A DNA stretch of 64,000 nt from Malacoraja senta (GCA_038087875.1 JAXLNO010001818.1:62001-126000); one strand, 5' to 3'. Positions 21,527 through 55,271 are shown, counted from the first letter of the stretch. Program-made: numbers and translations. Notes: a model not told the origin generated them from the letters alone.

Positions 21527-21552
<26 letters not shown>
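21250..21552 (+). mobile_element. L2-type 3' tail element (L2 3'UTR or L2-mobilised SINE)
   Basis: Ends in gtaaggtgtccttggg...gaaaggcac...taaataaaatgaa(tta)n, the typical L2 3' stem-loop and tail. Confidence 0.65.
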
Positions 21553-21554
<2 letters not shown>

Positions 21555-21557
<3 letters not shown>

Positions 21558-26591: not shown

Positions 26592-26723
26592 CTTTATATG
26601 CCGCAAGTTTAGAAACATCAATGCCAGTGCCAGCAACGCCACAATCAGGAATCGTCCGACATTAGTGTTTATTTTTGTAGCTTGTTTGTCCATGTTGGAG
26701 TTCCCCCGCACTCCCGTGTACAT
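26592..26723 (-). CDS. nxpe3: NXPE3-like gene, first coding exon: type II signal anchor
   Basis: Acceptor tttttttagttgtag|ATG at 26723. A second ATG in good Kozak context (aacATGG) at 26693 gives MDKQATKINTNVGRFLIVALLALALMFLNLRHIK. The donor AAG|gtgagt is phase 0, matching the phase-0 acceptor at 19969. Confidence 0.85.
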
Positions 26724-27640
26724 CTACAACTAAAAAAACAATTAAGAGCTCGAGAGTTTCCGCCCGTGGCTTCACACGTTAACTTTACAAAATGACAGTG
26801 CGAGTAAAACTGTGGCAAAGGACTGGAGGAGTATCTTTGGTATGAAGTTAGTTACGTTTCGTATGTAATTGTCTCTTCACTGCGTTAAGTACAGTGTTCT
26901 GTTAGAAACTGGTCACCCGTCGCGTTACATGATTTCTGCTGAAGCTCTCAAGTTTTGCACTTGGTTCCATTGTCAATATAATCTAATATTCTGGTCCCTG
27001 AACCCATGAAGACCCCGGGTAAAACATCCGCACGCAACCTCCGCCCGTCATTGGATTTATTGATCAACCTGTGATATTGATTTCGCGTTACGCCATTCAT
27101 CGTGAAAGTCAATCTATGATCTGCCCCGTGCTTTAAATATATTTGTCGGAAACACATGAAATAATAGTTCTATGAATCAGCCCTCCATCGAACAGTTTAC
27201 GTCCGAGAGTTCAAAGTTATCTGGCGGCATCTCTGGAGAACATCGATAAGATGGAGTTTGTCGTCGAGTCCCTTCTTCACACTGATTGTGGTGGTTGGAG
27301 AGGTTGTGGTGATGGTTGGTCGGATATACCGTTTCTAGGGGCACCAATATCTACCAAAGATACTAATATCTACCCCTAAAAAAAAACCTCCACGCCACAC
27401 TCAGTCTGTAGAAGGGTCCCGACCAGATTCATCGCCTATCCAAGTTCTCCAGAGATGCTGCCTGCCTGACCCGCTGAGTTACTCCAGCACTTCGTGTCTT
27501 TTTCTTTGTCAACCAGCATCTGTGGTTCCTTGTATCTGCTTTTATCGCGAGGTAGTTTTCTCAGGCACGAACAGTTTATTTGATTCTAAAACATAATAAC
27601 ATAAACGAGTTCGCGACGGCGTTGAATTACCTGCGATTTG
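26700..27640 (-). promoter_or_regulatory. CpG-enriched, mostly unique region upstream of NXPE exon 1; candidate promoter or 5'UTR exons
   Basis: CG dinucleotides are visibly denser than in the AT-rich surroundings; CCGCCC boxes near 26760 and 27042; candidate non-coding exon 27631-27683 (ctgcag| ... CAG|gtaatt). CpG ratio not computed. Confidence 0.4.
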
Positions 27641-28139
27641 CAATTATTTTCTTTTCATTGATGTCGAGAAGCTTTGACATTATCTGCAGGAGACAGATTG
27701 CTGTTGATATTACCTGGTCACATTTAGCACGAATGAATGTTTGAAACATTGATTGAGAAGTCGTCTCCTCCCAGTTTCGCTGTCCTCCTTATCTAATGCC
27801 ACACCCATTCATTCTACACGCACTCCTGTTCCGTGTGCAACAAGTCATCAGACCCTTCATCAGACGAAATAAACTTTGCACTTATTTTTATAAAAATTAA
27901 AGTATTCAGTAAAAGTTATTTTGTTTGGCCATTGACATCATGAACAGCACGGAGTAAAACTGTGTCTTGAACTTCTATGAGAACATTTCTGACTTCCTCC
28001 TCAAGAGGTGAAAGGCAAGAACAATAATAAAAAATATATGAAAAGCAGGACATCAGTGTTCACAATGAGAAAAACGAATTAATGGTGGTGCAAGAAGTGG
28101 TCCGAAATGTTCCGTTGCCAAGTCAGGATTAGGGTTATG

Positions 28140-29810
28140 CAGGTTGGTTCAAACACCTGAAAGTTGTGGGAAAGTAGCTGGTTTGAAGCTGGTTGTGTGA
28201 GCCTTCAGCCTGTCGGAAGCAGTAAGAAGTGGACATGGACGATGACAGATGGCACATACTTGAGATGATTCATATAGATACTTTCTATGGTGAGATGTGT
28301 TGTTCCACTGATAGATCGGGATGAGGTCACCACCCTCTGCAGCCTCCTGTGTTGGAATTGCCACACAATACAATTACGCCATCAGTCAAGGTGCTTTCTC
28401 AGTATATTATGCTGAATCTCTTTAAACCAAAGAAAGTTTAAGGTGATCAGAGAGTGAGACAAAATTGACTTTTCAGGTCAAGGACTCTTCATTGGAATGG
28501 AAAAAAAAAAGAAACCAATTTTAAAAGTCTCTTTCCCAAAGAACATCTTGAAAGGGGCTGCACAATGGATTGATCACCCTTAAAGATGGCCACAATCTCT
28601 TTCAAGTGATTGCTGGGATCAGCGCCAGACTTAATGATACAGTTAAAAGATATCTAGTTGTGTAAGAGAGTACAGAGGTTATGCCATTTTATGTCAAAAT
28701 AATAAATTAGTCAAATTCAGATTAGTTAATGGTTATATATATATAGGTTGCAATTCATTTCCTTATTCAGATGAAGTTTACACAGCAAGCAGGAAATGGC
28801 AATGATAGATACACCTATAAATACAACAACAAATGCAAATCAGCAGAATCGAATACAATACGTTTTATTGTCATTGCACAGCAACTGTACAACGAAATTT
28901 CAGTGCATCTCCTTCAGTTGTATACAATAAAAGACAGGATAAAAAGATTTAAAAGTACAAAAACACATTAACTCTCATATTACCAGCAAGACCTCAGGAA
29001 ATATAGCCGCTGCTGTGACTTCTTTACAAGAATGATGGTGTTCACTGTGAGGTCCTGGGAGATGGTGTTCACTGTGAGGTCCATGTGAGGTCCTGGGAGA
29101 TGTATGTACCCAGGAACTTAAAGCCAGTGACTCTCTCCACCATGTCTCCTTTGATCTAGAGAGGAGCAGGTTCCTCTCTCCTCCTCCTGAAGTCAATAAC
29201 CAGTTCTTTTGTTTTGGTTGAGTTGAGTACCAGGTTATTGTTAGTGCACCAGACAGTCAGTTTTTGGACTTCATCTCTGTAGACTCGTCGTTGTTATTTA
29301 TCAGCCCCACCACAGTCGTGTCATCTGCAAACTTAATGATCCGGTTTGTGCTCTGTGTTGGTGTGCAGTCATGGGTGTATATTGTTTAGAGAATAGGACT
29401 CAGCACACAACCTTGTGGCGCTCCTGTGCTGAGCGTCAGGACTGGGGAGTGATTGGACCCCATCCTGACAGTCTGTGGGCGATCTGTTAATAAGTCCTTG
29501 ATCCATCTGCATGTGTTGGCATTTACACCCAGTTTGTCCACCATTCTGCTGGGGATGATGGTATTGAATGCAGAACTAAAATCTACAAACAACATCCTCA
29601 CATATGAGCTGGGGCGCTCCAGGTGAGTCAGTGCAGAATGTAGAGCTATGTTGATGGCGTCCTCTGTTGACCTGTTAGCTCTGTATGCAAACTGATGCTG
29701 ATCCAGGGTGGATGGGAGTGAGGATTTAATGTGGGCCAGGACCAGCCTCTCAAAACACTTCATCACAGTTGAAGTAAGAGCAACAGTTGAAGTAAGAGCA
29801 ACAGGATACC
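28140..29810 (-). mobile_element. Rex1/Babar-type LINE fragments (about 28140-28400 and 28840-29810)
   Basis: ORF 29386..29838: [33 protein letters not shown] and [11 protein letters not shown]. Confidence 0.85.
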
Positions 29811-29829
29811 AAGTTAAACTAAGGCAACA

Positions 29830-30120
29830 CAGAGGCACTGTGATAGAGTGGCTGTCTTACAGCATTAGAGACCCGGGTTCGAGCCTGACTAGAGTGCTGT
29901 CTGGATGGAGTTTGTACATTCTCTCTGTCACCCTGTGGGTTTTCTCTGGGGGCTCCGGTTTCCTCCCAAATACAAAAGACGTGCAGGTTTGTAGGTTAAT
30001 TCGCTTCTGTAAATTGTCCCTAGCTTGAAGGACAGAAATAGTGAATGGACAATTGCTGGTCCGTGTGGACTCAGTGGCCCAAAGTTCCTGTTTCCATACT
30101 CTATCTCTAAACTAAACCAA
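29830..30120 (+). mobile_element. tRNA-derived V-SINE (HE1/HER1-like)
   Basis: tRNA-like head with B box (gggttcgag), V-domain gagtttgtacattctc...ggtttcctccca, and a (ctaaa)n tail. Confidence 0.85.
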
Positions 30121-30419
30121 AACTAATCTCCACTGCCTGCATGTGATCCATATCCTTGTATTCCCTGCATACCCACGAGCCTGTCCAAAACCTTCTTAAG
30201 CACCATTATCATGTCCTCCTCTACCACCACTCCTGGTAGCGCATTCTAGGTATCAAGCTCTCTCTGTGAAAAAAAACACTTGACCTGCACATCTCGTGTA
30301 AATTTTGCCCTTCGAAGCTTAACGCTGTGCTCTTTTGAAATGTGTGATAGACATGCAATCCCATTAGGGGCTGTCAACTGTGGTCAATAAAATCCATGGT
30401 TAACTACTATGAAAGACAT

Positions 30420-32420
30420 CAATTACACTTTCTCCCTGTCAAACAGGGATGTAATGCTGAGGTTCTATAAGGTGCCAGTCAAACCACATTTGGAGCATTG
30501 TGAGCAATTTTGGGCACCATATCTGAGGAAGGATGTGCTGGCTCTAGAGAGGGTCCAGAGGAGGTGTACAAGAATGATCACAGGAATGAATGGGTTAACA
30601 TATGATGACCATTTGATGGCAGTGGGCCTGTACTTGCTGGAGTTTAGAAGAATAAAGGGGGGACCTCATTGAATCATACAAAATAGTGAAAGTCTGTTTG
30701 CCTTTTGAAATTGGTTTGATTATGTTTTCTCCCACAAAATTGCATTAAAAAACCTATAGTGAAAATCCTATAATATATAGTGGTATACGAATTTGGAAAC
30801 AATTAAAAAAGACTTTAAAATTGGATAATTTATCACTCTGTCTCCCCATTATAAACAACCCTTTATTCAAACCCTCCATGTTGGATAAAGGCTTTACACA
30901 ATGGAAAAATTATGGAATTAAAAAGATTGGTCATCTTTATAGGAAAGGCACTTTTCTTTCATTTCAGGAGTTACAACAGATTTACGGACTACACTCAAAT
31001 AACTTTTTCAGATATTTACAACTTAAAGATTACATTAAATCAAATACACAAGATTACAGAACTAGGGAACCAGAAATCCTTGATGAATGTTTGAATAAAC
31101 ATCCTAATACAGAAAAATTAATATCTCATATTTATAATACCCTCTTAGATAGTGAGGTCTCGACGACGGATTTATATAGACACACATGGGAAAATGAATT
31201 AGGCCAACCCATAACGAAAGATATTTGGGACAAAAGTCTACAATATATACATCAATGCTCGTTAAATGCCAGACATGCCTTAATACAATTTAAAGTATTA
31301 CATAGATTACATTATTCTTAAACAAAATTAAATAGAATCTTCCCACATATCTCTCCTATTTGTGATAAATGCCAGCATTTAGAGGCTAACTTAACTCATA
31401 CCTTTGTAAATTGTATAAAAATCAAAAATTTCTGGAAGGACATTTTCAGAATAATTTCTGAAGTAGTCAATACCCAATTGGATCCCGACTCAAAATGAAT
31501 AATATTAGGAATGTCAGAACAAAGCCTAAGACTTACAATAAACCAAAGAAACTTTCTTGATTATAGTATAATAATTGGGAAAAAATTAATATTAAAATTT
31601 TGGAAAGGTCCTATAACCCCCACAATCAAAATGTGGATTATGGAAATGTCAGAGACCTTACATTTGGAAAGAACTAGACTTGTCTTAATAGACAAACTTG
31701 AATTATTTAATAGAATAAGGTCTCTATTTATTCATTTTTTGAAAGGGTAAATTGGTTCAGCACAGGAATCTGACTGAAATCCAAGCTCAGGATTAGAAGA
31801 ATAGTTATGTTTTATAACCTACGGACCTATCTCCAAAGTTGTATTATTGGTAAATTATTCCATTCTTCTTTATCATGCCTTTTTTTAAATTTCTCACTTT
31901 CTATCTATAAAACAAAACTAAATAGAAGCAGATTTAATATACAATTGATAAATGAGGACCACTATTATTTTGATAGCTGGATTCCCACCTATTAGCAAAG
32001 TAGGATTGATATATAAGAAATGTTTGTATTATGATATGCACATGCTTCTAATAAAAATATATATATTTTTTAAAACAAATAGTGAAAGGCTTAGATAGAT
32101 GTGGATGTGGAGAGGATGTCTCCAATGGTGGGAGAGTCTACGACGAGAGGTCATAGTCTCAATATTAAAGGACATTCCTTTAGGAAAGAGATGAGGAGGA
32201 ATTTATTTTGTCAGAGGGTGGTGATTCTGTGGAATTATTTGCCACAGAAGGCTGTGGAGTCCGTCAATGGATATTTTTAATTCTTGATTAGTATGCAGGT
32301 CAGGGGTTATGGGGAGAAGGCAGGAGAATGGGGTTAGGAGGGAGAGATAGATCAGCCATGATTGACTGGCGAAGTCGACTTGATGGGCCGAATGTTCTAA
32401 TGCTGCTGCCATCACTTATG
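30420..32420 (+). mobile_element. CR1 3' fragment split by an L1 insertion
   Basis: ORF 30409..30672 (EQFWAPYLRKDV) resumes after 32088 (gcttagatagat...). Confidence 0.85.
30693..32076 (+). mobile_element. 5'-truncated L1/Tx1-type fragment (ORF2 C-terminus with stops, plus 3'UTR)
   Basis: ORFs 30821..31321 and 31511..31750 are homologous to the C-terminus of 3053..6816; 12-bp TSD AAATAGTGAAAG (30681-30692, 32077-32088). Confidence 0.9.
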
Positions 32421-32717
32421 ACCTTATGACTCAGTTGGCTTCCTCCATGTGCTCCAGTTTTGTCCAATATACCAAAGACGTGCCAGTGAGTTAGTTGGAC
32501 ATTGCAAATTATCCGCCGTGGAGCTGAATGCAAGGAGAATCCAAGGGAGCTGAGTGCAAGTTGTGAGAGAGAGCTGTGGAACAGTTTGTCGACATTGCGT
32601 AGAAAACTAGCATAGAATCAATGGGCCGAATGACCTTTCCCTCTGTCATGAATGGGTCAGAGATAATATTACTCATTGCCTACCATTACAAAACAACATC
32701 CTTTGTTCTGAACTCAC

Positions 32718-32993
32718 CTTTTCTGGTCAGGTATGTCTTTCCAATTGCATAGTATGTAAGCCATAGATCCACACAGTCATGTTCTAACAAGCTCTTGAAA
32801 TAACGGTTCATTTTTTCATTCTTGTCCCATTTCTCTTTGAAGGGCTCAGCTATTGGATCATGCACCGTCCACTTTAATTTGTCCTTATCAAAACTAAATG
32901 CATAACTTCCATCAAAAGCCAACTTCAATATCCCTACAGTGGGACTGTGATCGTTCACCTCACAACCAAACTGTCCTTGAACGTCGTGATAAT
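32718..32993 (-). CDS. MHC class I-like alpha2 exon (276 bp)
   Basis: Acceptor ttttatttttatttcag|AT and donor AAA G|gtgagt, phase 1 at both ends. Encodes YHDVQGQFGCEV...AFDG..FSFD...W...KEKWD...LEHDCVDLWLTYYAIG. The two Cys are 63 residues apart, as for C101-C164. Confidence 0.93.
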
Positions 32994-33129
32994 CTGAAAT
33001 AAAAATAAAAATCATTATTTGATTAATTGTTATGACTGGGTAATTTCTGAACACCAGGGTCCAAGTCATTTATATATGTCACAAGTAGCAAGGGTCACAG
33101 CACGGATCCCTGCAGAACTCTACTTGTCA

Positions 33130-33605
33130 CTGAACTACAGCCTGAATATTTGGCCTTCCGTACAACTGTAGAGACCATATTATTGTACGGGTGTGAGGCA
33201 TGGACTCTCACTCCAGCACTGTCCTAGTCTCTCGATGGTACCTACACCCGAATGCTCGGAAAAGTTCAAAATGTCAGATGGAGGGACCACATCACCAACG
33301 CCCAGCTCTATGGGGAGAATCCACCTCTGACCGAGAAGATCACGTTGAGAAGGATGAGGCTCGCAGGTCACTGGCTCCGCCACCCAGAAATGCCAGCAAA
33401 CAAGGTTGTGCTGTGGGAACCCACCCATGGAAGACTTGACCCAGGACGGCCAATCAAGATGATGCAGAAGACGTTGATGGAAGACGCATGTGTAGAGATA
33501 AAAGAGGAGCTTGCCAGTTGCATGGAGGAGAGATGTGTGGTGCGTCCGTCACCGTGCCCATCGGAAACCAGCACGGCACTAATGTTTTCAACGATTATTA
33601 TTATC
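33130..33605 (+). mobile_element. RTE-clade LINE 3' fragment
   Basis: VETILLYGCEAWTL...YTRML...W..HITNAQLY...RRMRLAGH..RH...LWEP..GRP, followed by an (att)n tail. Confidence 0.85.
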
Positions 33606-33729
33606 ATCCACTACACCCCTCTATCCTGGGGATTTATCCACATTTCTCTTCAAGTGATCCAACATCTCCTTCTTGCTTAACTTCAAAGTGTCCCTGCATG
33701 TTAGCATTCTCCACATTGATTCTCCATGT

Positions 33730-34625
33730 GTAAGAAAGAACTGCAGATGCTGCAGATGTTAAAATCGTAGAGACACACAAAATGCTGGCGTAACTCAGCG
33801 GGTCAGGCAGCTTCCCTGGAGAGAAGGAATGGGCATTGTTTTGGGTCGAGACCCTTCTTCAGACTGATGTCAGGGGAGGGACAAAGATAGAATGTCGGCG
33901 GAGACAGTAAGACTGGTGGCAGAATTGGGAAGGGGGAGGGGATGGAGAGAGAAATCAAGGGCTATCGAAAGTAATAGAAGTCAATGTTCATACCGCTGGA
34001 GTATACACTACCCAAGCAAAATATGAGGTGCTGTTCCTCCAATTTGGGCTGGGCCTCACTCTGACAATGGAGGAGGCCCAGGACAGAAAGGTCAGATTGG
34101 GAATGGGAGGGGGAGTTGAAGTGCTGAGCCACCGGGAGATCGGGTAGGGTAAGACGGACTGAGGGGAAGTGTTCAACAAAACGATCGCCGAGCCTGCGCT
34201 TGGTCTCACTGATGTAGAGAAGTTGACAACTGAAACAGCGGATACAGTAGATGAGGTTGGAAGAGGTGCAAGTGAACTTCTGCCTCACCTGGAAAGACTT
34301 TAGGTCCTTGGACGGAGTCGAGGGGGGGACATAAAGGGACAGGTGTTGCATCTCCTGCAGTTGCAGGAGAAAGTATCCGGGGAGCGGGTGGTTTGGGTGT
34401 GAAGGGACGAGTTGACCAGGGAGTTTCGGAGGGAACGGTCTCTGCGGAAAGCAGAAACGGGTGGAGATGGGAAGATGTGATCAGTAGTGGGATCCCGTTG
34501 GAGGTGGCAAAAATGTTGGAGGATTTTATGATGTACTTACTATTAATGGTCCTTACTATTCTACATGTCTTCCTTGGTGAAACCAAACCTCGCCAAACTC
34601 CAAGCACATATTCCCTTCTATATCC
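33730..34625 (-). mobile_element. Penelope-like element 3' part (GIY-YIG endonuclease remnant and pseudo-LTR)
   Basis: ORF 33962..34351: FTCTSSNLIYCIRC..CQLLYISETKRRLGDRFVEH...PVAQHFN. A hammerhead-like motif on the minus strand lies at about 33835-33865. Confidence 0.9.
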
Positions 34626-34779
34626 TTAAGCAATCCACCTTTTGCTGCAATGGTTGCCTCGCCAAAAGTCGTCTGTCCCTTCCTTCTTTGTGTCTGTTTT
34701 GTACGTGTTAAATGTATATTCTTTAGTGTTCTTTAGCTTGTTTTGGGGGTGGGGGTTGGGGGAGTTGTGGGAAACTTTT

Positions 34780-35335
34780 CCTAATCTCTTACCTCGACGT
34801 AGATGCGATATTTTCTGTATCGTATCTCCGTCCACAATGCGGCCTAACATTGATGAATGGCGGCCTTTGCTAGAGATCGACCGGGAGATCCATCGCAGGA
34901 GCCTGTGGACTTACCATCATGGAGCTCGCGATCCCTGTCGGGGATCGACTTTAGGGCTCCAACTGTGAGAGCCTGCAAGACTTTAACATCGCGGAGCCCG
35001 TGGTCTACGGTCGAGACCGACATCCGGGATCTCCAAGCCGCAAGAGTTTCGACCGCTCCGACGTGGGAGTTTCGATTCCTCAACGGGGGGTTTCGACCAC
35101 CGACTGCAGATTGTTTGATTGCCCCGACTGCGGGAGATAAAGAGGAAGGAGATTAGACTTTATTGCCTTCCATCACAGTAAGGAACGTGCGGGCTCCTCT
35201 GTTGTGGATGTTTATGTTAACTTTTATGTTATTGTGTGTCTTGTTGCTTTTTTTTAGTATGGTGTATGGTAGTCTGCATTTCAATGTACCTTAATTGGTA
35301 TATGTGACAATAAACTAACCATGAAACCATGAAAA
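34780..35335 (+). repeat. Unclassified non-autonomous interspersed repeat; related copy at about 37900-38390
   Basis: Both copies share GC-rich ggacttaccatc/cgatccc stretches, ttgccttcca.cacagt.a.gaa and a gtatatgtga..aataaa tail resembling Rex-type 3' ends. Confidence 0.55.
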
Positions 35336-35539
35336 AGATGTGGGATTTTCTGTAATCCGACTCACTAAAGCCACTTTGTGGCCTTTATTAGCCCCTTTAG
35401 TTTTAAGCTTTAGAGCAGTGGTTCTTAACCTTTTTGGCCCCACGACCCCATCAGGCATTCTTGATCAGTACCGTGACCTCTGAAACAAAATTTGAAAAAA
35501 AACAGCCCGATTTATTAAAACATGTCTGCCATTGCTCAG

Positions 35540-37300
<1,761 letters not shown>

Positions 37301-38619
37301 ACACTGTTTGTGCGTGTATACGCAGGGCCTCAGAGGAATTTTATCAGTGGGTACAAAGTTTATTTTGGGCCCCCTTCCCTTCTCCATTAGTCATCCTGTT
37401 TTTATCCACTATGCTACAGTTTTATGCCATGAGCTGTAGCCTGCACGGCAAAAAGGGGTACGGAAGATGAGAGAGGGGTGGAATGGGGCGCTCTGTTGAT
37501 TTTCTGCATTTGAGGCCTTATGTCCCTATACACCCTCCATGATAAATATAAATAAGTATAAATAACATAAAAGGATCAGAAAGCACATTTGTTTTCCTTC
37601 ACTCTATAGATGCTGCCTCACCCGTTGAGTTTCTCCAGCATTTTATCTACCTTTGTTGTGAACATCTTTGTTTATGCTACAATACAGATAAGGAGAAAGA
37701 ATTCACATTGAAACATCCTTTTATGTTTCAATGCAGATCATATCATCAAAAGACATAATTATTAGTAAAAAGTAAAAGTTTTACTTTTCTTATATAAATT
37801 TACTTTATATAAAGAGCTTTCCTGGCCTTTTTTGTGTGAAAAATGTCAAATCACAGCATGAAAATGTATTGTTCTGGCAATGTATGATTCAATACTATTG
37901 ATTCAATACGTTGACACCGTGGAGCTGTGGTCTGCGGAGCTTCTAGCCGCGGGCGTGGCGTGGACTTACCATCCGGATCCTGGGATCCCTTGCCGGGGAT
38001 CACCAGAGACGAGCTCGAACCGCTGGCCTGCGGCCTATAACATCCTGAAGCTGCGGTCTCCACTAGGAAAGTGCCGAGTCGGGACCTCCAAGCCGCAGAG
38101 TGTGTTTGTCCGTCCCAACGTCAGAGTTTGGATCATCCCGACGAGAGGGCCTTGTACATTGGTCCGTCCCTAGATGCAACTACGGAGGGGTTATGGCCCC
38201 GAACACAGGTGAACAAAGGAGGAGGACTGGCTGAAACTTGTTGCCTTCCACCACAGTGAAGAATGCTGTAGTGGATGTTTGTGTTCAATTTTATTGTGTA
38301 TTGTGTGTTCTTTTTACGTGTATCACTGCTGGCAAATTCACTTCACTGCACCTTCGGGTGTATGTGATGAATAAAACTGACTTTGAATACTTAGCCTGGC
38401 CAAATCCACAAGACATTCATGAGACAATGTCGACCTTAAATAATTCTTAATCAGCTTGAGTTTGCTAAATGACCTCTGCAGAAGCTACTGTTGCTGGAAT
38501 TGTTAATAGTATTCTGAAGCTAACACAAACATTTGGAAACAGGTTACCAAGTCAATAGTCTGTTAACAAGTTCAACAGATCTAATGGTTTTAACTTCATT
38601 TATAAAATTCACCCTCCCA

Positions 38620-38730
38620 CTAACACACACATACACTCAGACACACACTCACTCACCTACACCCACACACATCCACACACACACACACACACCCTCACCC
38701 ACTCACTCACACCCACCCATCCACACACTG
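38620..38730. repeat. Imperfect (CA)n microsatellite
   Basis: Directly visible. Confidence 0.9.
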
Positions 38731-39020
38731 ACCCAAACCCAGGCCCGGACCACTGAAACAGCCGCGGCTCCTGACTCTCACCACCTCCCCGGGCGAGGCC
38801 ACCGCAGCCACTGTCGCCGACCTTCACTGTCTTCAGAAAGCCAATGATGCTGCTGCCCATATCTCTACTCCAGCTCCCCACGGGCCTCCACCAGCGACTC
38901 TGCCGACCCTCGCCTCTCCACCGGCCACCAGTGGGCCAGAGCCATCACCTCACCAGAGTTCCCGGCATAGCACCAGGCCCACAACCTAAACCATGCAGAC
39001 AGCACATGGTCTGATTGCTG

Positions 39021-39500
39021 GTTCCTAGTGCTCCCCCCCCCCCCTCCTGCAGGGAAGACCCATCAGTATTGATGACTCTGCTGTGTCCTAGTGCTCTCCC
39101 CCCCCCCCTCCTGCAGGGAAGACCCATCAGTATTGATGACTCTGCTGTGTCCTAGTGCTCTCCCCCTACTCCTGCAGGGAAGACCCATCAGTAGTGATGA
39201 CTCTGCTGGGTCCTAGTGCTCTCCCCCCTCCTGCAGGGAAGACCCATCAGTAGTGATGACTGCTGGGTCCTAGTGCTCCCCCCCCTGCCCCCCCACACGG
39301 AAGACCCATCAGTAGTGATGACTCTGCTGGGTCCTAGTGCTCTCCCTCCTCCTACAGGGAGGATCCATCAGTAGTGATGACTCTGTTGGGTCCTAGTGCT
39401 CCCCCCCCACCTACACGGAAGACCCATCAGTAGTGATGACTCTGCTGGGTCCTAGTGCTCTCCCTCCTCCTACAGGGAGGATCCATCAGTAGTGATGGGT
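39021..39500. repeat. ~57-63 bp minisatellite, 8 units
   Basis: Unit tcctagtgctc(c)n tcctgcagggaagacccatcagtagtgatgactctgctggg. Confidence 0.93.
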
Positions 39501-39931
39501 CTTCCCCTTCCCCCTCTTTTAATCAGGTTACCCCGACCACACATCCGCTTGTGAAAATTCCCTGCTTTATTATGGATCACAATTTCTACGAATTACGATA
39601 TATAAAACTCTGAAGGCACAAAATGTGAATGCTAGTCATCACAAAATATATGCAAAAAATTTCTGAGATTTCAGGAAATTCCCGCCCCCCCCCCTTCCTT
39701 CAGCTCCCGGGCCCCTTTTGGACTCCGAGCCCGGGTACGATGTACCCCCTGCACCCCCCTCTCATAGGCCCCGTGTATACGTACGCGCATACGTGAATAA
39801 AAAACTGTGTGTGGTATGTACCTTTGTTAGGTTCCTAAAAATGGGCTCAACAAATTGATGTTCTTTACAACCCCTTCATGACCCCCGGAAAACCCCAAAC
39901 GACCCCCTTGGGGGTCACGACCCCCCCACTG

Positions 39932-40105
39932 CTTTGGAGATACAGTGCTGAAACAGGCCCTTCAGCCCATACTAGGGACAATTTACATTTACACCAAGCC
40001 AATTTACCTACATCTCAGAGAAAAGCCACACAGGTTACGGGGAGAACATGCAAACTCCGTACAGTCACCACTCGTAGTCAGGTTCAAACCAGGGTCTCTG
40101 GTGCT
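39932..40105 (-). mobile_element. V-SINE, interrupted in its tail by the hAT element
   Basis: Reverse complement of the V-domain (gggagaacatgcaaactccgtacag) and tRNA-like head. Confidence 0.8.
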
Positions 40106-40487
40106 GCAAGGCAGCAACTCGTGTAAGGCCACGATCTCTTGGCTTTGCTTATAGTTATTATCATGTTTTATCTTCTATTGTGTTCTTTTTGCTTATTGCA
40201 TATAAACAAATATAAAGCTGCACATAAGGTTGGATCTTTTCGAGGCCCGAGCTGACCCATCTTTTACCACAAAAGTGCTTCCTATATTTAGAGAAACATA
40301 GATATAATAAGGCTCACCCCTCATGGGCATTGAAGGCTTTCTCTAAAATATGGAGACCATTAAGCTGTTCACTGCCAAGTTTATTTTTCACTATTGGCCA
40401 TGACCCCTAGTGTACTCGGCGGTGGCATTGAACAGGTTAAAGATATCCAGTGATGTGTAGCTGCGCTACCTTTCCTTGATATTTTTA

Positions 40488-41169
40488 AGGGCCTGTCCCA
40501 CTTACGTGTCCTTGGTACACAAATTATGCGACCTCGTGGTCGCGTTGAGGCGCACGGGCATCGTATGGCCGCGCGGGGCCGGTCCCACTTGGAAGCGCAG
40601 AGGGGTATGTAGTTGTGCGCGACATCGCGCGGGGCTCCGATAATTTTGTAGTGAACGAAATCTTCGCGCGCCAACGGCCTGTCGCGGAACTGACGGCCAA
40701 AGTGGGACAGGCCCAAGACCCTGGCGCGACGCAAAGTCTCACTTTGAACAGCAGCAGAAGGAGGCAAACGATCGCCGAACTCGGCCTGGGGCTCACGGCC
40801 GTTGAGGTCCGGATCCGCCCCCACTTCTACTCCCAGAGCGGGGCCAAGAAAATTGAAGATAGACACAAAATGCAGGAGTAACTCAGCGGGACCGGCAGCA
40901 TCTCTGGAGAGAAGCAATGGGTGACGTTTCGGGTCAAGACCCTTCTTTTCAGACTGAAGAAGAGTCTCGACATGAAACGTCACCCATTGCTTCTCTCCAG
41001 AGATGCTGCCGGTCCCACTGGCTTACTCCAGCTTTGTGTCCATCTTCAAATAATGTCACACGCTCCAGACGGCTGTGCGTACGCATGTAATCGCGCCCGA
41101 CCTTCGTCAGACCATCGCGGCTCAACGCGTAATTTGCGTTCCAAGGACACGTAAGTGGGACAGGCCCCT
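40488..41169. mobile_element. PIF/Harbinger-type MITE carrying a palindromic Penelope-end insert
   Basis: TIRs AGGGCCTGTCCCACTTACGTGTCCTTGG / CCAAGGACACGTAAGTGGGACAGGCCCCT; TTA TSD at 40485-40487 and 41170-41172. Confidence 0.88.
40853..41049. repeat. ~197-bp palindrome made of two head-to-head Penelope-end (hammerhead-motif) modules
   Basis: Arms ttgaagatagacacaaa... and ...tttgtgtccatcttcaa, centred on cagActg at 40950-40956. Confidence 0.85.
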
Positions 41170-41957
41170 TTACTTAGATGATTCATTCCCTCTGGCATTG
41201 ATTGATGAATCAAAGTGGGGGGGGGGGGGGGGGTTGATGGAATTTGTAAGGATTTGCTGAAGTCAGTTTGCTTAAAACTGCTCACTCCTTGAAAAGGAGA
41301 GTCTGTGAACTTTAGCCCAGAGACAAAGAACAGTTTGTGAACTCAAGGTTATAATTGATAAAAATCTAGGCACAACTGTGAACAACAACCCTTTATTAGG
41401 ATGAAGGTAATGAGCTAATGCCAACCATGCCCCTGGGACCAGGAGTAATAAGGAAGGGTCAAAACTTGGATGATGTTTTCATTCCAATAAGAAACTCTAC
41501 AAACAATGATAGCTGAATAAAACATAATTATGTTGTATCGATGAAGAGCCTCCTTTTCAAGCTGCTTTCTGCAGTCTTTTAGTTGTTCTGCAGATCCTTT
41601 ACATTCTCTCGTCTTCGTGTTTTCAAGAAACACCACAAATAGCCGAATGTATACTAATTATAGAAACATAGAAAAATAGGCACAGGAGTAGGCCATTCGG
41701 CCATTCGAGCCAGCACCGCCATTCAATATGATCATGCCTGCATCTAGAATCAGTACCCCATTCCTGCTTTTAGAAACATAGACACACAGAAAATAGGTGC
41801 AGGAGTAGGCCATTCGGCCCTTCGAGCCTGCACCGCCATTCAATATGATCATGGCTGACCATCCAACTCAGTATCCTGTACCTCCCTTCTCTCCATACCC
41901 CCTGATCCCTTTAGCCACAAGGGCCACATCTAAATCCCTCTTAAATATAGCCAATGA

Positions 41958-43667
41958 TGTCTCTTATAGGCTGAATAAATGCTATAAAAATGATCTTTTT
42001 ACCACAAATTTTATATCTATTCCAGTCAATACCGATATACTTACCCAAAATGTTTTTTTAAAAATTGGATGCTGATATTATAAATTTTATATGGGACTAT
42101 AAATCCCACAGAATCCAAAGAAAACATTTGTGTAAACCTAAGGAATTTGGTGGATTATCACTCCCCAATTTTTTATATTATTACTGGGCCACAAATGTCA
42201 AAAATATGATTCACCTGTTGGACAATTCGGCCCAGCAGGTGGATTGGATAGTAATGGAGAGAGAGGACTGCTCCCCTTTTAACATAGGAGCGATCCTTCT
42301 CTCACCAACAAAAATAAAGAATACAATATATAGTAAAAATCCAATTATTCACAGTACAATTAGAATTTGGAAACAAATAAAATTATTGTTAAAATTAAGA
42401 AATCTATCACTTCTTTCACCTATAATGAATAATCCTTCGTTTAAACCTTCTATGATAGATAGAGCTTTTATAAATTGGGAAAGAGCAGGAATTAAAACGT
42501 TTGGAGATATGTATGATAACGGAAGTTTTTTAACATTTCACCAATTACAACTTAAATATAACTTGAATAATAATCAATATTTTAAATATTTCCAACTACG
42601 TGACTATTTGAAAAAGTATACACGGGAATATCAAAATATCTCTCCTGACTTATTAGATGGGATAATGAATATAAAAGCGGAATCAGCTAATTTAATATCA
42701 TACCTATATAATTCCATTTTAAATATAGAAATTCCATCATCGGACGGGATCAGAAGAGAATGGAAACAGGAACTAGCTATAAAAATCTCGAAAGAGAGTT
42801 GGGATAAACATCTATTATATGTGCATAAATGTTCGATTAACGTAAGACATACTCTGATTCAATTTAAAATTTTACATAGATTATATTATTCAAAAGCTAA
42901 ATTAAGTAAATTTTACCCAAATACCTCTGCAAACTGTGATAAATGCCTAGTCCAAGAATCAACTACAGCACATTCTTTTGTTTTTTGTATAAAAGTTCAA
43001 AAATTTTGGAATGAAATTTTTGAAATTTTCACTAAATTATTTTAAATAAAACTGAAACCGAATGCAGAACTGATTATTTTTGGAACAATAGAAGCAAGTT
43101 TGGAGCTGACTTCGTTTCAAAGGAGTTTTCTTAGTTATGGCTTAATAACGGCAAAAAAATTAATACTGAAATTTTGGAAAAATGCTCCTACGCCAACAAT
43201 AAAAATGTGGACTTCTAATATGTCGGAATTGTTACATCTAGAAGATATGAGATTCCTCCTAGCAGGTAAACAAGACCAATTCCAAAAGATTTGGTCTCCA
43301 TATATCGACCTATTACAAACATAGGGTGCAACAAAATGTTGATAATAAATGGTTTTAGGTCCTGGCGAGGGGTGAGTAAAGATAAGAAAAAGGCACATCC
43401 CTTTCATATTGTCCTATCTTATTTTCTTTTTTCTCTTTTTTTCTTTTCTTCTTTAACTATTTCTTGTGGTTTAGGTTCACATGTGTGTTCCTGGACCACT
43501 TTTTCATTCACTCACTGACTGTCCTTGCTAGTTCTTTCTATTCTTCTTTTCTATTAAAGTTGAAAAACAGAAGTGGTACAAGAACTGTATAAATTTACGT
43601 TATTGCAGATTACTGTAATGTAAAATACTTCTAAAAAATAAATAAAAAATAAAAAAATAAAAAATAT
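41958..43667 (+). mobile_element. 5'-truncated L1/Tx1-type fragment
   Basis: ORFs 42065..43045 and 43100..43324 are close homologs of the ORF2 C-terminus at 5500-6816; A-rich tail; 13-bp TSD ATATAGCCAATGA (41945-41957, 43668-43680). Confidence 0.92.
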
Positions 43668-44103
43668 ATATAGCCAATGAACTGGCCTCAACTACATTCT
43701 GTGGCAGAGAATTCCAGAGATTCACCACTCTCTGTGTAAAAAATGTTTTTCTCATCTCAGTCCTAAAAGATTTCCCCTTTATCCTTAAACTGTGACCCCT
43801 TGTTCTGGACTTCCCCAACATCGGGAACAATCTTCCTGCATCTAGCCTGTCCAACCCCTTAAGAATTTTGTAAGTTTCTATAAGATCCCCCCTCAATCTT
43901 CTAAATTCTAGCGAGTACAAGCCGAGTCTATCCAGTCTTTCTTCATATGAAAGTCCTGACATCCCAGGAACCAGTCTGGTGAACCTTCTCTGTACTCCCT
44001 CTATGGCAAGAATGTCCTTCCTCAGATTAGGAGACCAAAACTGTAGACAATACTCCAGGTGTGGTCTCACCAAGACCCTGAACAACTGCAGTAGAACTGC
44101 AGT

Positions 44104-44131
44104 CTGAAGAAGGGTTTCGGCCCGAAACGTT
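44104..44131 (+). ncRNA. Minimal type I hammerhead ribozyme motif within a 98-bp Penelope-end insert (44098-44195)
   Basis: CUGAAGA-A-GGGU(UUCG)GCCC-GAAAC-GUU: intact core, stem II closed by a UUCG loop, and a palindromic AACGUU in place of helix III. The insert is flanked by CTGCAGTAGAAC (44086-44097, 44196-44207). Confidence 0.75.
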
Positions 44132-46379
44132 GCCTATTTCCTTCGCTCCATAGATGCTGCTGCACCCGCTGAGTTTCTCCAGCAATTTTGTGTACCTGCA
44201 GTAGAACCTCCCTGCTCCTATACTCAAATCCTTTTGCTATGAATGCTAACATACCATTCGCTTTCTTCACTGCCTGCTGAACCTGCATGCCTACTTTCAA
44301 TGACTGGTGTACCATGACACCCAGGTCTCGTTGCATCTCCCCTTTTCCTAATCGGCCACCATTCAGGTAATAGTCTACTTTCCTGTTTTTGCCACCAAAG
44401 TGGACACATTTATCAACATTATACTGCACCTGCCTTGCATTTGCCCACTCACCCAGCCTATCCAAGTCACCTTGCAGCCTCCTAGCACCCTCCTCACAGC
44501 TAACACTGCCCCCCAGCTTCGTGTCATCCGCAAACTTGGAGATGTTGCATTTGATTCCCTCGTCCAAATCATTAATATATATTGTAAATAGCTGGGGTCC
44601 CAGCACTCAGCCTTGCGGTGCCCCACTAGTCACTGACTGCCATTCTGAAAAGGACGCGTTTACTCCTACTCTTTGCTTCCTGTCTGCCAGCCAGTTCTCT
44701 ATCCACATCAATACTGAACCCCCATAACCGTGTGCTTTAAGTTTGTATATTAATCTCTAATGTGGGACCTTGTCGAAAGTCTTCTGAAAGTCCAGATATA
44801 ACACATCCACTGGTTCTCCCTCTACTAGTTACATCCTCGAAAAATTCTATAAGATTCGTCAGACATGATTTACCTTTCATAAATCCATGCTGACTTTGTC
44901 CAATGATTTCACCATTTTCCTAATGTGCTGCTATCCCATCTTTAATAACTGACTCTAGCAGTTTCCCCACTACCGATGTTAGACTAACTGGCCTGTAATC
45001 CCCGTTTTCTCTCTCCCTCCCTTTTTAAAAAGCGGGGTTACATTAGCTACCCTCCAATCCTCAGGAACTACTCCAGAATCTAAAGAGTTTTGAAAAATTA
45101 TCACTAATGCATCCACTATTTCTGGGGCTACTTCCTTAAGTACTCTGGGATGCAGCCTATCTGGCCCTGGGGATTTATCGGCCTTTAATCCATTCAATTT
45201 ACCTAACACCACTTCCCGGCTACCTGGATTTCACTCAGTTCCTCCATCTCATTTGACCCCCGGTCCCCTGCTATTTCCGGCAGTTAATTAAGTCTTCCTT
45301 AGTGAAGACAGAACCAAAGTAGTTATTCAATTGGTCTGCCATGTCCTTGTTCTCCATGATCAATTCACCTGTTTCTGACTGCAAGGGACCTACATTTGTT
45401 TTAACTAATCTTTTCCCCCATATCCCTTGATTCCTTTAGCCTTAAGAGCTAAATCTAACTCTCTCTTGAAAGTACGTTGTTTAGATAAGAGCCTTCTTTT
45501 CAAGCTTCTTTCTGCGGTCTTTTAGTTGAGTTTTGCAGGTGCTTTAGTTTGTCTCGTCTTCTCTCTGCTGAATATGTAACAACTACAAGCTGTGAATAAC
45601 AAAAAATCCTTGAAAACTAACACTGGACTGCGAGTGTGAGTACAAAGCATGTTCTAATGTGACCCAACTTCAGTCTGAAGTAGGATCCTCACCCGAAATA
45701 TCTGCCTTCCCATGTTCTCCAAAGATGCCGCTTGACCCGTTGAGTTCCTCAGCACTTTGTGTCTGGAGGAAAGCAGCCTCTGCTCTTCCTTTCATCTACA
45801 ATTGTTAAATAGTTCAATCCAGACAATTAGTTCAATTTTACATTGTTGACTAAAATGAGAAAGAAGGCAATTCAAGGATAAATAACTGCCCATAATTCCA
45901 TGTGACAGAGAAAGAGGTCTTTCAGCCTCCTGAGCCCACTCAGGAGGCTGAGGGGTGATCATATAGGGGTGCTTAAAATCATGAGGGGAATTGATAGAGT
46001 GTATGCCCAGAGCCTTTTACCCAGAGAACAAAATTATTCCAACACTAATTTGCCCCAAAACGGATCTTCCTCATTTCTATCAATGCCACAAATCCACCTC
46101 TATTTGCAGCGGTGGCTTAATCTACTAATTCAGCACATTTTGGTATGTGGGAGGAAACTGGAGAACAAACATTGTCACAGGGAGAATGCTTATACTCCAC
46201 ACAGACTGCACTGGAGATGATTGAACCCGGATCACTGGCGCTGTGAGGCAGCAGCGCTCTTTGCTATAAAGCAGTCATAGAGAGTCACACAGCAGGGAAA
46301 CAAGCCCTTTGGCCCAACTTGTCCATGCTAATCAAGATACCCCATTTAAGCTAGTCCCATTTACCCTGGAATCGGTAGA

Positions 46380-46870
46380 CATCATTCAAAACGTTTCTCT
46401 CTAGATGTCAGCTGCTCTACATCGGTGAGACCAAGCGCAGGCTTGGCGATCGTTTCGCCAAACGCCTCCGCTCGGTTCGCAACAACCAACCTCATCTCCC
46501 TGTGGATCAGCACTTCAACTCCCCCCTCCCATTCCAAATCCGACCTTTCTACCCTCGGCCTCCTCCATGGCCAGAGTGAGGACCGCCGTAAATTGGAGGA
46601 GCAGCACCTCATATTTCGCTTGGGCAGTTTACACCCCAGCGGTATGAACATTGACCTCTAATTTCAGGTAGTCCCTACTTTCTCCTCCCCTTCTCAGCTC
46701 TCCCTCAGCCCACTGACTCCACCTCTTCCTTTCTTCTTCCTGCCCCCCCCCATTCCCCCCACCCTCACATCAGTCTGAAGAAGGGTTTTCGGCCCTAAAC
46801 GTTGCCTATTTCCTTCGCTCCAGAGATGCTGCCTCACCCGCTGAGTTTCTCCAGCATTTATATCTACCTA
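46380..46870 (+). mobile_element. Penelope-like element 3' fragment (GIY-YIG end and pseudo-LTR)
   Basis: LYIGETKRRLGDRFAKRL...HFNSP...KLEEQHLIFRLGSLHPSGMNID; degenerate hammerhead motif near 46774. Confidence 0.88.
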
Positions 46871-47921
46871 TGCATGTCCCTGTCCATGTGTCTATTAAAT
46901 ATTGTTATTGTACCTGCCGCAACTCCATTCTCTGGCAGGTCATTCCATATGCTGACCACTCTCTGAGCACAAAGATTGTCCCAAGTTCCAATTAAATCTT
47001 TCCCCTCTCACATTAAACCCATGTCCTCTGGTTATTTTATTCTCCTTCTCTGGGTAAAAGGCTCTGGGCATACACTCTATCAATTCCCCTCATGATTTTA
47101 AGCACCCCTATATGATCACCCCTCAGCCTCCTGTGCTCCATGGAATAAAGCCCTGGCTTGCCCAATCTCTCCCTCTTGTTCACACCCTTGAGCCCCGACA
47201 ATATGCTCATAAATCTCATAAACATAACAATGTTGCAGATAATAAGCGCACCATAAATAATGCAAATATAAAAATTATTTTTGAAGGCAATATGATTCAA
47301 TAAACATGGTTCAATGAATCAGATGATAATCTAATAAATGTCATTCACATGTATTCACATATAATTTGAAAATAATAATAAATATTGCAAGATGTGGAAA
47401 ATTGATAGAAATTATGCCCAGTGCATAATATTTTGATGTATTGTTCCCTGTTTGTACCCTCACCCTGTTTTAGTTCAGTTAAAGATTAATAATATAATTT
47501 GTTTAATGTGTAACCGAAGAGGTAACAAAAAGCAATGTTTTCAGAAATAATTAATCATGAATGAATGACACTTTATTGTGACATGTGACAAGTCACAGTG
47601 AAATTCTTTGTTTTGTAAACCCAACGTATGTCAAGATTCTTCACATAAAGGGCACCGACAAAGTTATAAAGTCTCCCACACCAGGTCCTCCTTTGTCCCC
47701 ACCCCCCCCCTCCCCACCTCACCATGGTTCCCCCACGCCTAGTCCTGCTTTGTTCAATGGTACACTACGAATGTCATTGAATTAACACAGTAATGGTGAT
47801 AGGACTTATTGATTTACAATATAAAACATGTCCAATTGCAAATTATATGGATATACAAGTGTGGTGCAGATGGATTTGGACAGCTTACTTTACAATTGGT
47901 GCCCAAGATAATTTAGAGATA

Positions 47922-48130
47922 TAGCACGAAAACAGCCCTTAGAGTCCACAGTGACCAGTGATCCACTTTGGCATACAGGCTTGGAGTGTGGGAGGAAACC
48001 GGAGCATCCGGGGAAATCCCACGCAGGTCACGGGGAGTACGTACAAACTATGTACAGACAGCACCTGAGGCCAGGATCAACCCTGGGTCTCTGGCACTAC
48101 GGCAGCAACACTACGGCTGAACCACAATGC
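47922..48130 (-). mobile_element. V-SINE
   Basis: Reverse-complement V-domain (tgtgggaggaaaccggagca...cacgcaggtcacgggg). Confidence 0.75.
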
Positions 48131-49011
48131 CATTTAGGTTATCCTTTAAATATTTCACACAACATTTCATTCAAAATTTGTCAATAAAAGTAAAAACAAT
48201 TGGTGAGGTACGCAAGGGATTTTAACCATTCAAAAAGCCACCAACATTTTAATGATTTGTAAAATGCTGGAACACACAGCAGGTTCAACAGAACCTATGG
48301 AAAGAGAAACAAAATTAATGCTTCAGAATTGTGAGAATGTGTAAGTTACAGACAGGAGTGGGAGGCATGGTTGGACATAGCGGGTATCACTAATACGGTA
48401 ATGACAGGTTTCCATGGTGATAAACTGACAATGAAGCCATCAGACAATGGCATTTTTGGTTTTTATTTCACATTTGCAGCATCTGCAGTTCTTAGGTTAG
48501 TAACTCAGCATGGAAACGGGCCATTCTGCCCACCAATTCCATGCCAACCATCGATCATCTTTCACACTAGTTCTATGTTATCCCAAAATGGACACAAAAT
48601 GCTGGAGTAAGTCAGGGGAAACACTCTGTCTGAGGAAGGGTCTTGACCTGAAAAGTCATCCATTCCTTGTATCCAAAGATGCTGCCTGTCCCGCTGAGTT
48701 ACTCCAGCACATTGTGCCTATCTTTGCTGTAAACCAGCATCTTCAGTTCCTTCCTACACATCTATGTAATCCCACTTTCCTCACCCATTCTCAGCACACA
48801 AGAGTAATTTACAGAGCCCAATTAACCTACAAACTCTCACGTTTTCAAGATATGGGATGAAACCGGAGCACCTGGAGGAAATATCTGTGTTCACAGGGAG
48901 AACATGTAGTCGGGATCAAACCTGGGTCTCTGGCACAGCGAGAAATTTCTTTGAGATGTTTTTTTATGAACATTGATCACACTCCAATTGTATTGAAATG
49001 AATGAACTAAC

Positions 49012-49272
49012 TTGCTGTTTCGTTCTGCCTCTGCATCCATTCATCGACTTGCCCTTTGATGATTCCATGGAAACCAGTTTCAGAGACCGTATTTGTTACC
49101 CAGTAATTCCTGTCAAATGCAGCCGCCATCCATTTCTGTCTTGGAACTGTAATGACCATGTTTTTGTCATAATACTGTATCTCACAACCGTCCAGAACAC
49201 CCACAACACTATATTCTGGTAGATGAGTACTCCCGTGGTTCAGGGTGTAGTAGTAGATCAGTGTGTGAGGCT
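49012..49272 (-). CDS. MHC class I-like alpha1 exon (261 bp)
   Basis: Acceptor attattgtctttgtgtctag|AG and donor GCA A|gttagt, phase 1 at both ends. Encodes (E)PHTLIYYYT...PEYSVVGVLDG.EIQYYD...PRQKWM....RNYW...MQRQNETA, with H3, Y7, W51, Y59, W60, R84 and the N86 sequon. Splices in frame to the alpha2 exon (A|AT = Asn). Confidence 0.92.
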
Positions 49273-55250: not shown

Positions 55251-55271
55251 ACTTTTGGGCAGCACTATTAT

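Follow-up and report, generated by a model that had tools for sequence, protein, structure and literature searches.

Truncated MHC class I pseudogenes and gene fragments are common in the class I regions of mammals and fish. In cartilaginous fish no alpha3-less class I-like protein is described in the literature that we searched, in agreement with an earlier note on the DNA analysed here. The MHC is the only reported location of elasmobranch class Ib genes (PMC10751288). One shark and ray class Ib lineage, that of PDB 9ch4, is called CD1-like in a review; a literature search for a primary paper on 9ch4 or UGA/UFA gave only a review citing a personal communication. The published name of 9ch4 may be UGA or UFA, and 'UGA'-type is used here as a working label for the lineage. 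It has been described as single or low copy, yet it is multi-copy in skates, with ten annotated paralogues in Rhinoraja longicauda.

All 26 full-length relatives compared contain an alpha3 domain (motif YSCH[VI][DE]H) and a transmembrane (TM) segment, and their cytoplasmic tail carries a YQNI motif (RRDYQNI). The distance from alpha2 to alpha3 is 2.8-3.1 kb in three Rhinoraja loci, which puts the ancestral intron 3 at only ~3 kb, and 20 kb in Amblyraja radiata, whose gene has long introns (32 kb, 11 kb and 20 kb). In Leucoraja, the NCBI gene models continue into the GPR139-like gene that follows, and one predicted isoform (P0169) skips alpha3, so that alpha3-less messages of the 9ch4-type lineage are at least conceivable.

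The window analysed here is a 64-kb stretch of DNA from Malacoraja senta. A 9ch4-type class Ib copy, represented by its alpha1 and alpha2 exons, and an NXPE3-like gene both lie on its minus strand (Table 1). The arrangement is best explained, with a probability of roughly 60%, as a partial, front-half copy of a class Ib gene joined to an NXPE3-like gene by rearrangement. On this view it is most likely a commonplace gene remnant and not a novel immune receptor with two domains.

Exon anatomy and lineage of the class I copy

The two platform exons had been described as open, 261 and 276 bp long, with intact splice sites and a phase-1 alpha2 donor, and reading of the exons and frames confirms this. 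The splice sites are tgtctag/AG (acceptor) and CAA/gttagt (donor) for alpha1, and tttcag/AT and AAAG/gtgagt for alpha2; joined, the exons form a single open frame of 178 residues. The alpha2 exon matches Pfam MHC_I (PF00129; E 4.5e-13, 49.6 bits, gathering cut-off 28.3) and contains the conserved disulphide pair, with cysteines in GCEV and HDCVD. The alpha1 exon by itself has no Pfam match. Family HMMs identify both exons (E 9.5e-55 for alpha1 and 3.6e-54 for alpha2). In phmmer searches alpha1 matches 9ch4_A (E 2.2e-38) as well as nurse shark, chicken and other class I chains, and alpha2 matches 9ch4_A with E 5e-33 and, weakly, UL16-binding protein 3 (1kcg_C, E 8e-8).

Table 1. Positions of the class I copy, the interval behind it and the NXPE3-like gene, counted from the first nucleotide of the window
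Feature	Position	Strand	Remarks
Intron 1, part	49273..58290	-	collinear with A. radiata intron 1 (locus L001 41880 back to 25375)
alpha1 exon, class Ib (9ch4/'UGA'-type) copy	49012..49272	-	261 nt, open, phase 1 at both ends
Intron 2	32994..49011	-	16 kb; unique parts collinear with A. radiata intron 2; rich in transposon insertions
alpha2 exon	32718..32993	-	276 nt, open, both Cys retained, phase-1 donor, Tyr->Asp at fourth codon
Ancestral intron 3, first 0.64 kb	32076..32717	-	common to A. radiata and Rhinoraja genes
L1-like LINE 3' fragment inside intron 3	30693..32075	+	absent from A. radiata and Rhinoraja
Ancestral intron 3, next 0.69 kb	30003..30692	-	common to A. radiata and Rhinoraja genes
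SINE	29809..30002	-	same site in A. radiata gene (90% identity); absent from three Rhinoraja copies
LINE reverse transcriptase (RT) internal piece	29100..29808	-	at breakpoint; open frame 29838-29386; without both element ends; lower limit 29100 approximate, from read depth
Low-copy DNA upstream of NXPE	26724..29099	.	no counterpart in any class I locus compared
NXPE3-like exon 1, signal anchor	26592..26723	-	by-eye comparison with P0189 and P0219
NXPE3-like exon 2, neurexophilin domain	19182..19969	-	Pfam Neurexophilin (PF06312) E 1.2e-35

By these comparisons of sequence the alpha1 and alpha2 exons belong to the 9ch4 lineage. Identity over alpha1 and alpha2 amounts to 94.4% with A. radiata XP_032898133, 88-92% with Leucoraja and Rhinoraja proteins and about 70% with 9ch4_A. 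A phylogeny, which the earlier note had proposed, places the copy inside the skate clade of the lineage with support of 97/94.

The back half of the gene is missing from the window. The absence of a recognisable alpha3 after alpha2, first reported from reading by eye, is borne out by motif, tblastn and family HMM searches across all 64 kb. The motif [YF].C.[VA].H occurs in none of the six frames of the window, and tblastn with three full-length relatives matches only alpha1 and alpha2 there, with no alpha3, TM or tail. Family HMMs for alpha3, for TM and tail and for the leader return noise only (best E ~1 over 2720 segments of the window). In particular, neither the alpha3 family HMM nor the six-frame motif finds an alpha3 exon directly downstream of 32718, and no YQNI-type cytoplasmic tail is matched within the window by tblastn or family HMM. 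The window also contains no leader exon; it covers 14.7 kb upstream of alpha1, and the leader of the relatives lies 15-32 kb upstream. A crude scan from 32717 to 26724 reveals no TM- or GPI-signal-like phase-1 exon with a usable acceptor. A copy without alpha3 and membrane anchor cannot make a normal beta2m-associated surface molecule.

The breakpoint and the NXPE3-like gene

Between 58290 and 29809 the window follows the A. radiata class I gene collinearly, and at 29809 all homology to class I genes, those of Rhinoraja included, ends abruptly. The end point coincides exactly with the 3' end of the SINE, 2.9 kb past alpha2. The last 1.5 kb of ancestral intron before alpha3, taken from A. radiata and Rhinoraja, is not matched anywhere in the window, not even with a word size of 7. 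The LINE piece on the far side of the junction lacks both element ends, which is expected of a breakpoint and not of a simple insertion. A simple insertion of this piece into intron 3 at 29808 was considered and rejected, since its 3' end is missing and the ancestral intron does not resume beyond it.

The 6 kb between alpha2 and the NXPE gene had been described as mostly SINE and LINE. That description is roughly half correct: the repeats are a 1.4-kb LINE 3' fragment, a 0.2-kb SINE and the 0.7-kb LINE RT piece, and the rest is 1.3 kb of ancestral intron 3 and ~2.4 kb of low-copy DNA, the latter with one short high-copy element near 27300-27500. The L1-like LINE fragment at 30693..32075 is bordered by a 12-13 bp target-site duplication (CTTTCACTATTT). 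The window also contains an intact LINE ORF2.

The class I copy runs into an NXPE gene, as had been noted; the gene is NXPE3-like, has the same orientation and begins 6 kb downstream of alpha2. Its exon 1 has ATGs at 26723 and 26693, an in-frame TAG just upstream and a phase-0 donor (AAG/gtgagt). Exon 2 shows 89-91% identity to two A. radiata NXPE3-like proteins, and the identity of the gene to bird and turtle NXPE3 is 52-59%. The window ends inside the gene and includes neither its middle exons nor the C-terminal (NXPE_C) exons. On CM021380.1, A. radiata has two NXPE3-like loci, L002 and L004, that align collinearly at 92-96% with window positions 8444-23210; the comparison covers these loci up to the counterpart of positions 22000-23200 in the window. 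The class I gene of A. radiata is located on CM021389.1. Thus the synteny comparison proposed earlier, run against A. radiata, puts the NXPE3-like cluster and the class I gene on separate chromosomes. The 10 kb that follow the last exon of L004 contain no class I exon.

Origin and state of the copy

A rearrangement would account for this structure as follows. The copy would have retained the class Ib gene from within intron 1 through alpha1, intron 2 and alpha2 to a point 2.9 kb into intron 3. The breakpoint at the SINE 3' end (29809) would join this class I part to the internal LINE piece, followed by the DNA upstream of the NXPE3-like gene, and the remaining intron 3 with the alpha3, TM and cytoplasmic exons would have been left behind. 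The result is most likely a non-functional relic, which would have been duplicated together with NXPE3-like genes. The back half is presumably not to be found beyond the window either, and the copy is presumably not expressed.

Neither exon of the copy contains a stop or a frameshift. On the window's own branch exons have changed at 10 of 537 positions and introns at 82 of 2188, i.e. at half the rate (Fisher p=0.03), and all seven indels on this branch are in introns, with none in exons. The lower exon rate together with the lack of exon indels indicates that the copy was selected, or gene-converted, for part of its separate history, and the rate difference also indicates that decay is recent or incomplete. 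The ratio of nonsynonymous to synonymous changes (N:S) on the branch is 6:3, not different from neutral (p=0.39), and three replacements unique to the window fall at residues invariant in 14 skate proteins. The Tyr that is replaced by Asp in alpha2 is kept in 25 of 26 homologues. The replacements at conserved residues and the N:S ratio may be read as signs of relaxed constraint. In addition, DNA of the same or a sister species contains a second copy of the alpha2 region with a 2-bp deletion in the exon.

The alpha2 exon occurs at near identity in no RNA run searched; the best-matching runs, X4 and X5, turned out to be DNA contigs. Run X28, of the same study and the sole candidate for RNA of this species, gave 17 repeat-like contigs, none of them over the exon, and run X2 is probably DNA too. 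No short protein (70-222 residues) with alpha2-like sequence was found in a collection of 5.8 billion protein clusters.

The earlier note had offered three options, namely an alpha3-less receptor, an NXPE gene nested in the intron between alpha2 and alpha3, and a recently truncated duplicate. The truncated duplicate fits best, as the homology ends in intron 3 and the DNA on the NXPE side matches a locus that is on another chromosome in A. radiata. The ~3.7% intron divergence on the copy's own branch qualifies the word 'recently'. The nested arrangement, in which intron 3 of a class I gene that is complete in all other respects took up a segment with an entire NXPE3-like gene, is possible but unlikely. 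An insertion into the intron would produce the same clean break at 29809, and it would place the alpha3, TM and tail exons to the left of the window, at a distance of over 33 kb from alpha2. That the window stops inside the NXPE gene, with no NXPE C-terminal exon found in it, is consistent with this, as are the already very long introns of skate copies (those of A. radiata given above and 16 kb here) and the apparently constrained exons on the window's branch. However, transcription and splicing would have to bridge an entire gene on the same strand that has a promoter and terminator of its own, the intron in question was ancestrally only about 3 kb long, and no class I exon follows the paralogue L004 within 10 kb. 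A misjoin of the assembly at a repeat, such that the class I and NXPE parts are not adjacent in the real genome, is very unlikely. The junction does lie within repeats (the SINE end and the LINE piece), its halves are on different chromosomes in A. radiata, and none of the contigs listed bridges 29809, but the repeat at the junction is shorter than 1 kb, far shorter than long reads, and the depth on either side is of the same order in two DNA runs.

A working alpha3-less product appears improbable. Driven by the class I promoter, it would be a secreted, beta2m-independent alpha1-alpha2 protein that might act as a soluble ligand or decoy like ULBP/RAET1, and its C terminus could come either from the retained intron (tail GEFRTKDVVL) or from splicing to AG sites immediately upstream of the NXPE start (tail of ~20 residues). 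The open exons with intact splice sites, both alpha2 cysteines and an N-glycosylation site, the halved substitution rate of the exons and the alpha3-skipping Leucoraja isoform all speak for such a product. Against it stand the failure to find a phase-1 TM- or GPI-like exon with a usable acceptor between alpha2 and NXPE, the lack of a resembling protein in the cluster collection and of a known transcript, the change at a nearly invariant Tyr, the frameshift in the other alpha2 copy, and a leader exon and promoter not seen in the window. An alpha3-less receptor has no positive support: there is no in-phase anchor exon, no in-frame join to NXPE and no transcript, and the change at the conserved Tyr is radical. 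Splicing of alpha2 to the NXPE exons, which would fuse alpha1-alpha2 to a signal anchor and NXPE domains, is hardly credible. The two genes share a strand, with 6 kb between them, and the Leucoraja models do read through into a neighbour. Here, however, the phase-1 donor joined to either AG 5' of the NXPE ATG runs into a stop after ~20 codons, joined to the phase-0 acceptor of NXPE exon 2 it does so after 35 codons, and an in-frame TAG directly precedes the NXPE ATG. The reading frames thus reject an in-frame MHC-NXPE chimera for the window copy. Given an N-terminal leader, moreover, the NXPE anchor would become a stop-transfer signal and leave the disulphide-rich NXPE domains in the cytosol. 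PF00129 and PF06312 are combined in 0 of the 47 matches listed (188-597 and 150-478 residues), two ranges that a full fusion of ~740 residues would exceed.

Read as a truncated duplicate, the copy matters mainly for annotation, where neither a class I gene nor an alpha3-less receptor should be recorded for it. It also means that the front half of a class Ib gene was carried into, and seemingly multiplied with, an NXPE3-like cluster that is on another chromosome in A. radiata, as against the reported mapping of such genes to the MHC only (PMC10751288). If the fragments are expressed, they constitute a natural experiment in two-domain class I platforms. A bolder but improbable proposal is that skates carry a small family in which an alpha3-less CD1-like alpha1-alpha2 platform directly upstream of NXPE3-like genes is kept by selection and yields either a secreted beta2m-independent two-domain ligand or decoy or else, within the NXPE transcription unit, a regulated 5' module. 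Such selected units, if real, would extend alpha3-less class I-like molecules beyond mammals for the first time and place a class I derivative away from the elasmobranch MHC.

Comparison with known systems

The downstream gene resembles NXPE3 in having a signal-anchor exon and a neurexophilin-domain exon; it differs in that no middle or NXPE_C exon is present in the window. With mammalian ULBP/RAET1 and EPCR the class I copy shares only the layout, since an alpha1-alpha2 platform is all that it would encode. Those proteins have their own GPI-signal or TM exon and are expressed, whereas neither feature is found for the window copy, which is a recent derivative of a normal three-domain gene. With the 9ch4-type class Ib genes the exon lengths, phases and flanking intron sequence are the same, and the SINE in intron 3 is shared with A. 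radiata. Unlike these genes, the window copy is without alpha3, TM and YQNI tail and is joined to an NXPE3-like gene. With truncated class I pseudogenes the copy has in common a front half with intact-looking exons, an intron cut at repeats and another copy that is frameshifted. It departs from this pattern in that the fragment is linked to a gene of an unrelated family and seems to have multiplied together with it.

Class I exons and their relatives

Both class I exons in the window have a polypyrimidine-AG acceptor and a GT donor, and joined they form a single open frame of 178 residues. The α2 exon matches Pfam MHC_I (E 4.5e-13), and the best structure match by far is 9ch4_A (PDB id: 9ch4; α1 2.2e-38, α2 5.4e-33, ~70% identity), followed by shark, bird and mammalian class I, MR1 and ZAG. 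Because of this anatomy and these matches, the description given in the earlier note is correct: the exons are open, 261 and 276 bp long, with intact splice sites and a phase-1 α2 donor.

Features of the class I–NXPE region in window coordinates, and exons of the Amblyraja radiata class I locus (L001) in its own coordinates
Feature	Position	Strand	Remarks
α1 exon	49272-49012	minus	261 nt; donor CAA/gttagt; phase 1 at both ends
α2 exon	32993-32718	minus	276 nt; donor AAAG/gtgagt; phase 1 at both ends
Intron 3, ancestral part 1	32717-32076		0.64 kb
L1-like LINE 3' fragment	32075-30693		in intron 3; private to the window
Intron 3, ancestral part 2	30692-30003		0.69 kb
SINE	30002-29809		same site in A. 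radiata; absent from 3/3 Rhinoraja copies
Internal LINE reverse-transcriptase piece	from 29808 downward		~0.7 kb; RVT_1 5.9e-14
NXPE3-like exon 1 (first coding)	26723-26592	minus	signal anchor; phase 0 donor
NXPE3-like exon 2	19969-19182	minus	neurexophilin domain, Pfam 1.2e-35
L001 leader	from 10001
L001 α1	41881-42141
L001 α2	53464-53739
L001 α3	74155-74436

Relatives were gathered by an exhaustive profile search with α2 as the query. Across α1–α2, the closest is Amblyraja radiata XP_032898133 (341 aa; 94.4% identity), followed by ten Rhinoraja longicauda paralogues on a single chromosome (90-92%), Leucoraja erinacea proteins (~89%) and sawfish, ray and shark proteins (58-77%). Maximum-likelihood analysis of α1–α2 places the window sequence within the skate clade, sister to a group of A. 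radiata and L. erinacea (support 97/94 and 99/97), with the Rhinoraja copies branching before these three. Past "TYLTRK", all full-length relatives run on into a C1-set α3 domain (YSCH[VI][DE]H) and a transmembrane (TM) segment, and the full-length skate proteins carry YQNI in their C-terminal tail. According to a review, the 9ch4-type lineage, a non-classical class Ib lineage of elasmobranchs, has one or few copies; in Rhinoraja longicauda, a stretch of ~8 Mb on one chromosome (CM130181.1, 30.8-38.4 Mb) holds ten or more annotated paralogues, with compact α2–α3 introns of ~3 kb. An NCBI prediction for Leucoraja erinacea (isoform X4), a computational model, joins α2 straight to the TM exon, skipping α3, and also continues into a GPR139-like gene.

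The back half of the gene was sought in the window in several ways. The C1 motif [YF].C.[VA].H is absent from all six frames, and tblastn with three full-length relatives (E up to 10) matched α1 and α2 alone. Family HMMs for α3, TM/tail and leader gave only noise (best E ~1 over 2720 open segments), in the same search in which those for α1 and α2 scored 1e-54. The earlier statement that there is no recognisable α3 therefore holds within the window by motif, tblastn and family HMM alike.

End of class I homology in intron 3

The A. radiata gene spans 77.7 kb on CM021389.1. The window is collinear with it from 58290, in intron 1, via α1, intron 2 and α2 into intron 3. In three Rhinoraja class I copies, α3 lies just 2.8-3.1 kb past α2. 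The LINE 3' fragment within intron 3 lies between two copies of CTTTCACTATTT (12-13 bp), a sequence that the other species compared have only once. No class I locus shows homology beyond the last base of the SINE, window 29809 (L001 65560), the exact point at which it stops. Ahead of α3, A. radiata (from L001 73239) and Rhinoraja both have 1.5 kb of ancestral intron to which nothing in the window matches, even with 7-base words.

The LINE piece that begins at 29808 lacks the 3' end of the element and for this reason is not a plain insertion; low-copy DNA comes next. In A. radiata (L001 65380-73239), the shared SINE gives way at the identical end base to 7.7 kb of different inserted DNA, after which come a repeat of CAGAAGCC and the remaining intron. 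The SINE 3' end has therefore been struck separately in the two lineages. A second stretch in the A. radiata locus (L001 80478-80861), 6 kb past the real α3, is 44% identical to α3 and TM of that gene and may be left over from another class I copy.

Elsewhere in the window, a LINE ORF2 that looks intact (3044-6577, plus strand; 1175-1178 residues) encodes endonuclease and reverse-transcriptase domains, and its family is also represented by fragments at 30821-31750 and 42065-43324. Class I intron 2 holds a 250-residue open frame on the minus strand (36263-37015) and more open frames at 35889-36242; the former has no Pfam match and looks like a hAT/ZBED-type transposase remnant.

The NXPE3-like neighbour and the readings of the locus

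The NXPE3-like gene and the class I exons share a strand, and the exon for the NXPE C-terminal domain was not found within the window. Two A. radiata NXPE3-like loci (CM021380.1, 54.15 and 57.68 Mb) are collinear with window 8444-23210 at 92-96%; their chromosome is not the one that carries the A. radiata class I gene. No NXPE exons occur in the fetched class I loci and no class I exons in the NXPE loci, whose upstream reach is too short to decide. NXPE intron 1 contains GC-rich tandem arrays (24217-24404 and 26093-26495) with 20-, 44- and 80-bp units and 84-98% matches; on each strand several of their frames are open.

Three options had been put forward in the earlier note, and of these a truncated duplicate of a 9ch4-type class I gene is best supported (probability about 0.6), homology ending at 29809 and the back-half exons not being in the window. 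The other two are less likely. An NXPE gene nested inside a giant intron 3 of the class I gene retains some probability because the window ends within the NXPE gene, and it is an unlikely arrangement. That the class I/NXPE join is an assembly misjoin is very improbable.

Intron 3 retention after α2 would append GEFRTKDVVL before a stop. An in-frame TAG stands immediately 5' of the NXPE3-like ATG; joins from the α2 donor to either AG just 5' of this ATG meet a stop after ~20 codons, and a join to the phase 0 acceptor of NXPE exon 2 meets one 35 codons on. Between α2 and NXPE, a scan turned up no phase-1 exon combining a hydrophobic stretch of 18 residues with a pyrimidine-rich acceptor. The window copy therefore has no in-frame MHC–NXPE chimera, with stops in all joins read, and no visible anchor exon; as a general reading of the locus, such a chimera is scarcely credible. 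At most, judging from its splice frames, the copy could possibly yield a soluble two-domain product, and that it does so as an α3-less protein is doubtful indeed.

Constraint on the window copy

Between the window and A. radiata, α1–α2 has dS 0.098 and dN 0.030 (ratio 0.30). With changes polarised by the Rhinoraja copies, 10/537 exon sites changed on the window branch versus 82/2188 aligned intron sites (odds ratio 0.49, Fisher p=0.03), and on the A. radiata branch 11/537 versus 116/2188. Indels on the window branch number 0 in exons versus 7 in introns (probability of none ~0.18), and its replacement-to-silent ratio, 6:3, is indistinguishable from neutrality (p=0.39) or from constraint. At three positions the window alone has replaced a residue that does not vary among 14 skate proteins; one of these changes is Tyr to Asp at the fourth codon of α2, where 25/26 homologues keep Tyr. 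These sequence comparisons are most simply read as a copy that spent part of its separate history under constraint or gene conversion and would have been drifting since.

Among DNA contigs from this or a sister species (sequencing runs X4 and X5), one of 556 bp (X5) carries α2. Its exon has lost 2 bp and the intron next to it has gained 25 bp (window 32842 and 32664), which makes it a second, frameshifted copy of the α2 region. Allowing a small chance of more, what the window shows is an ordinary fragment of a gene from an already known class I lineage.
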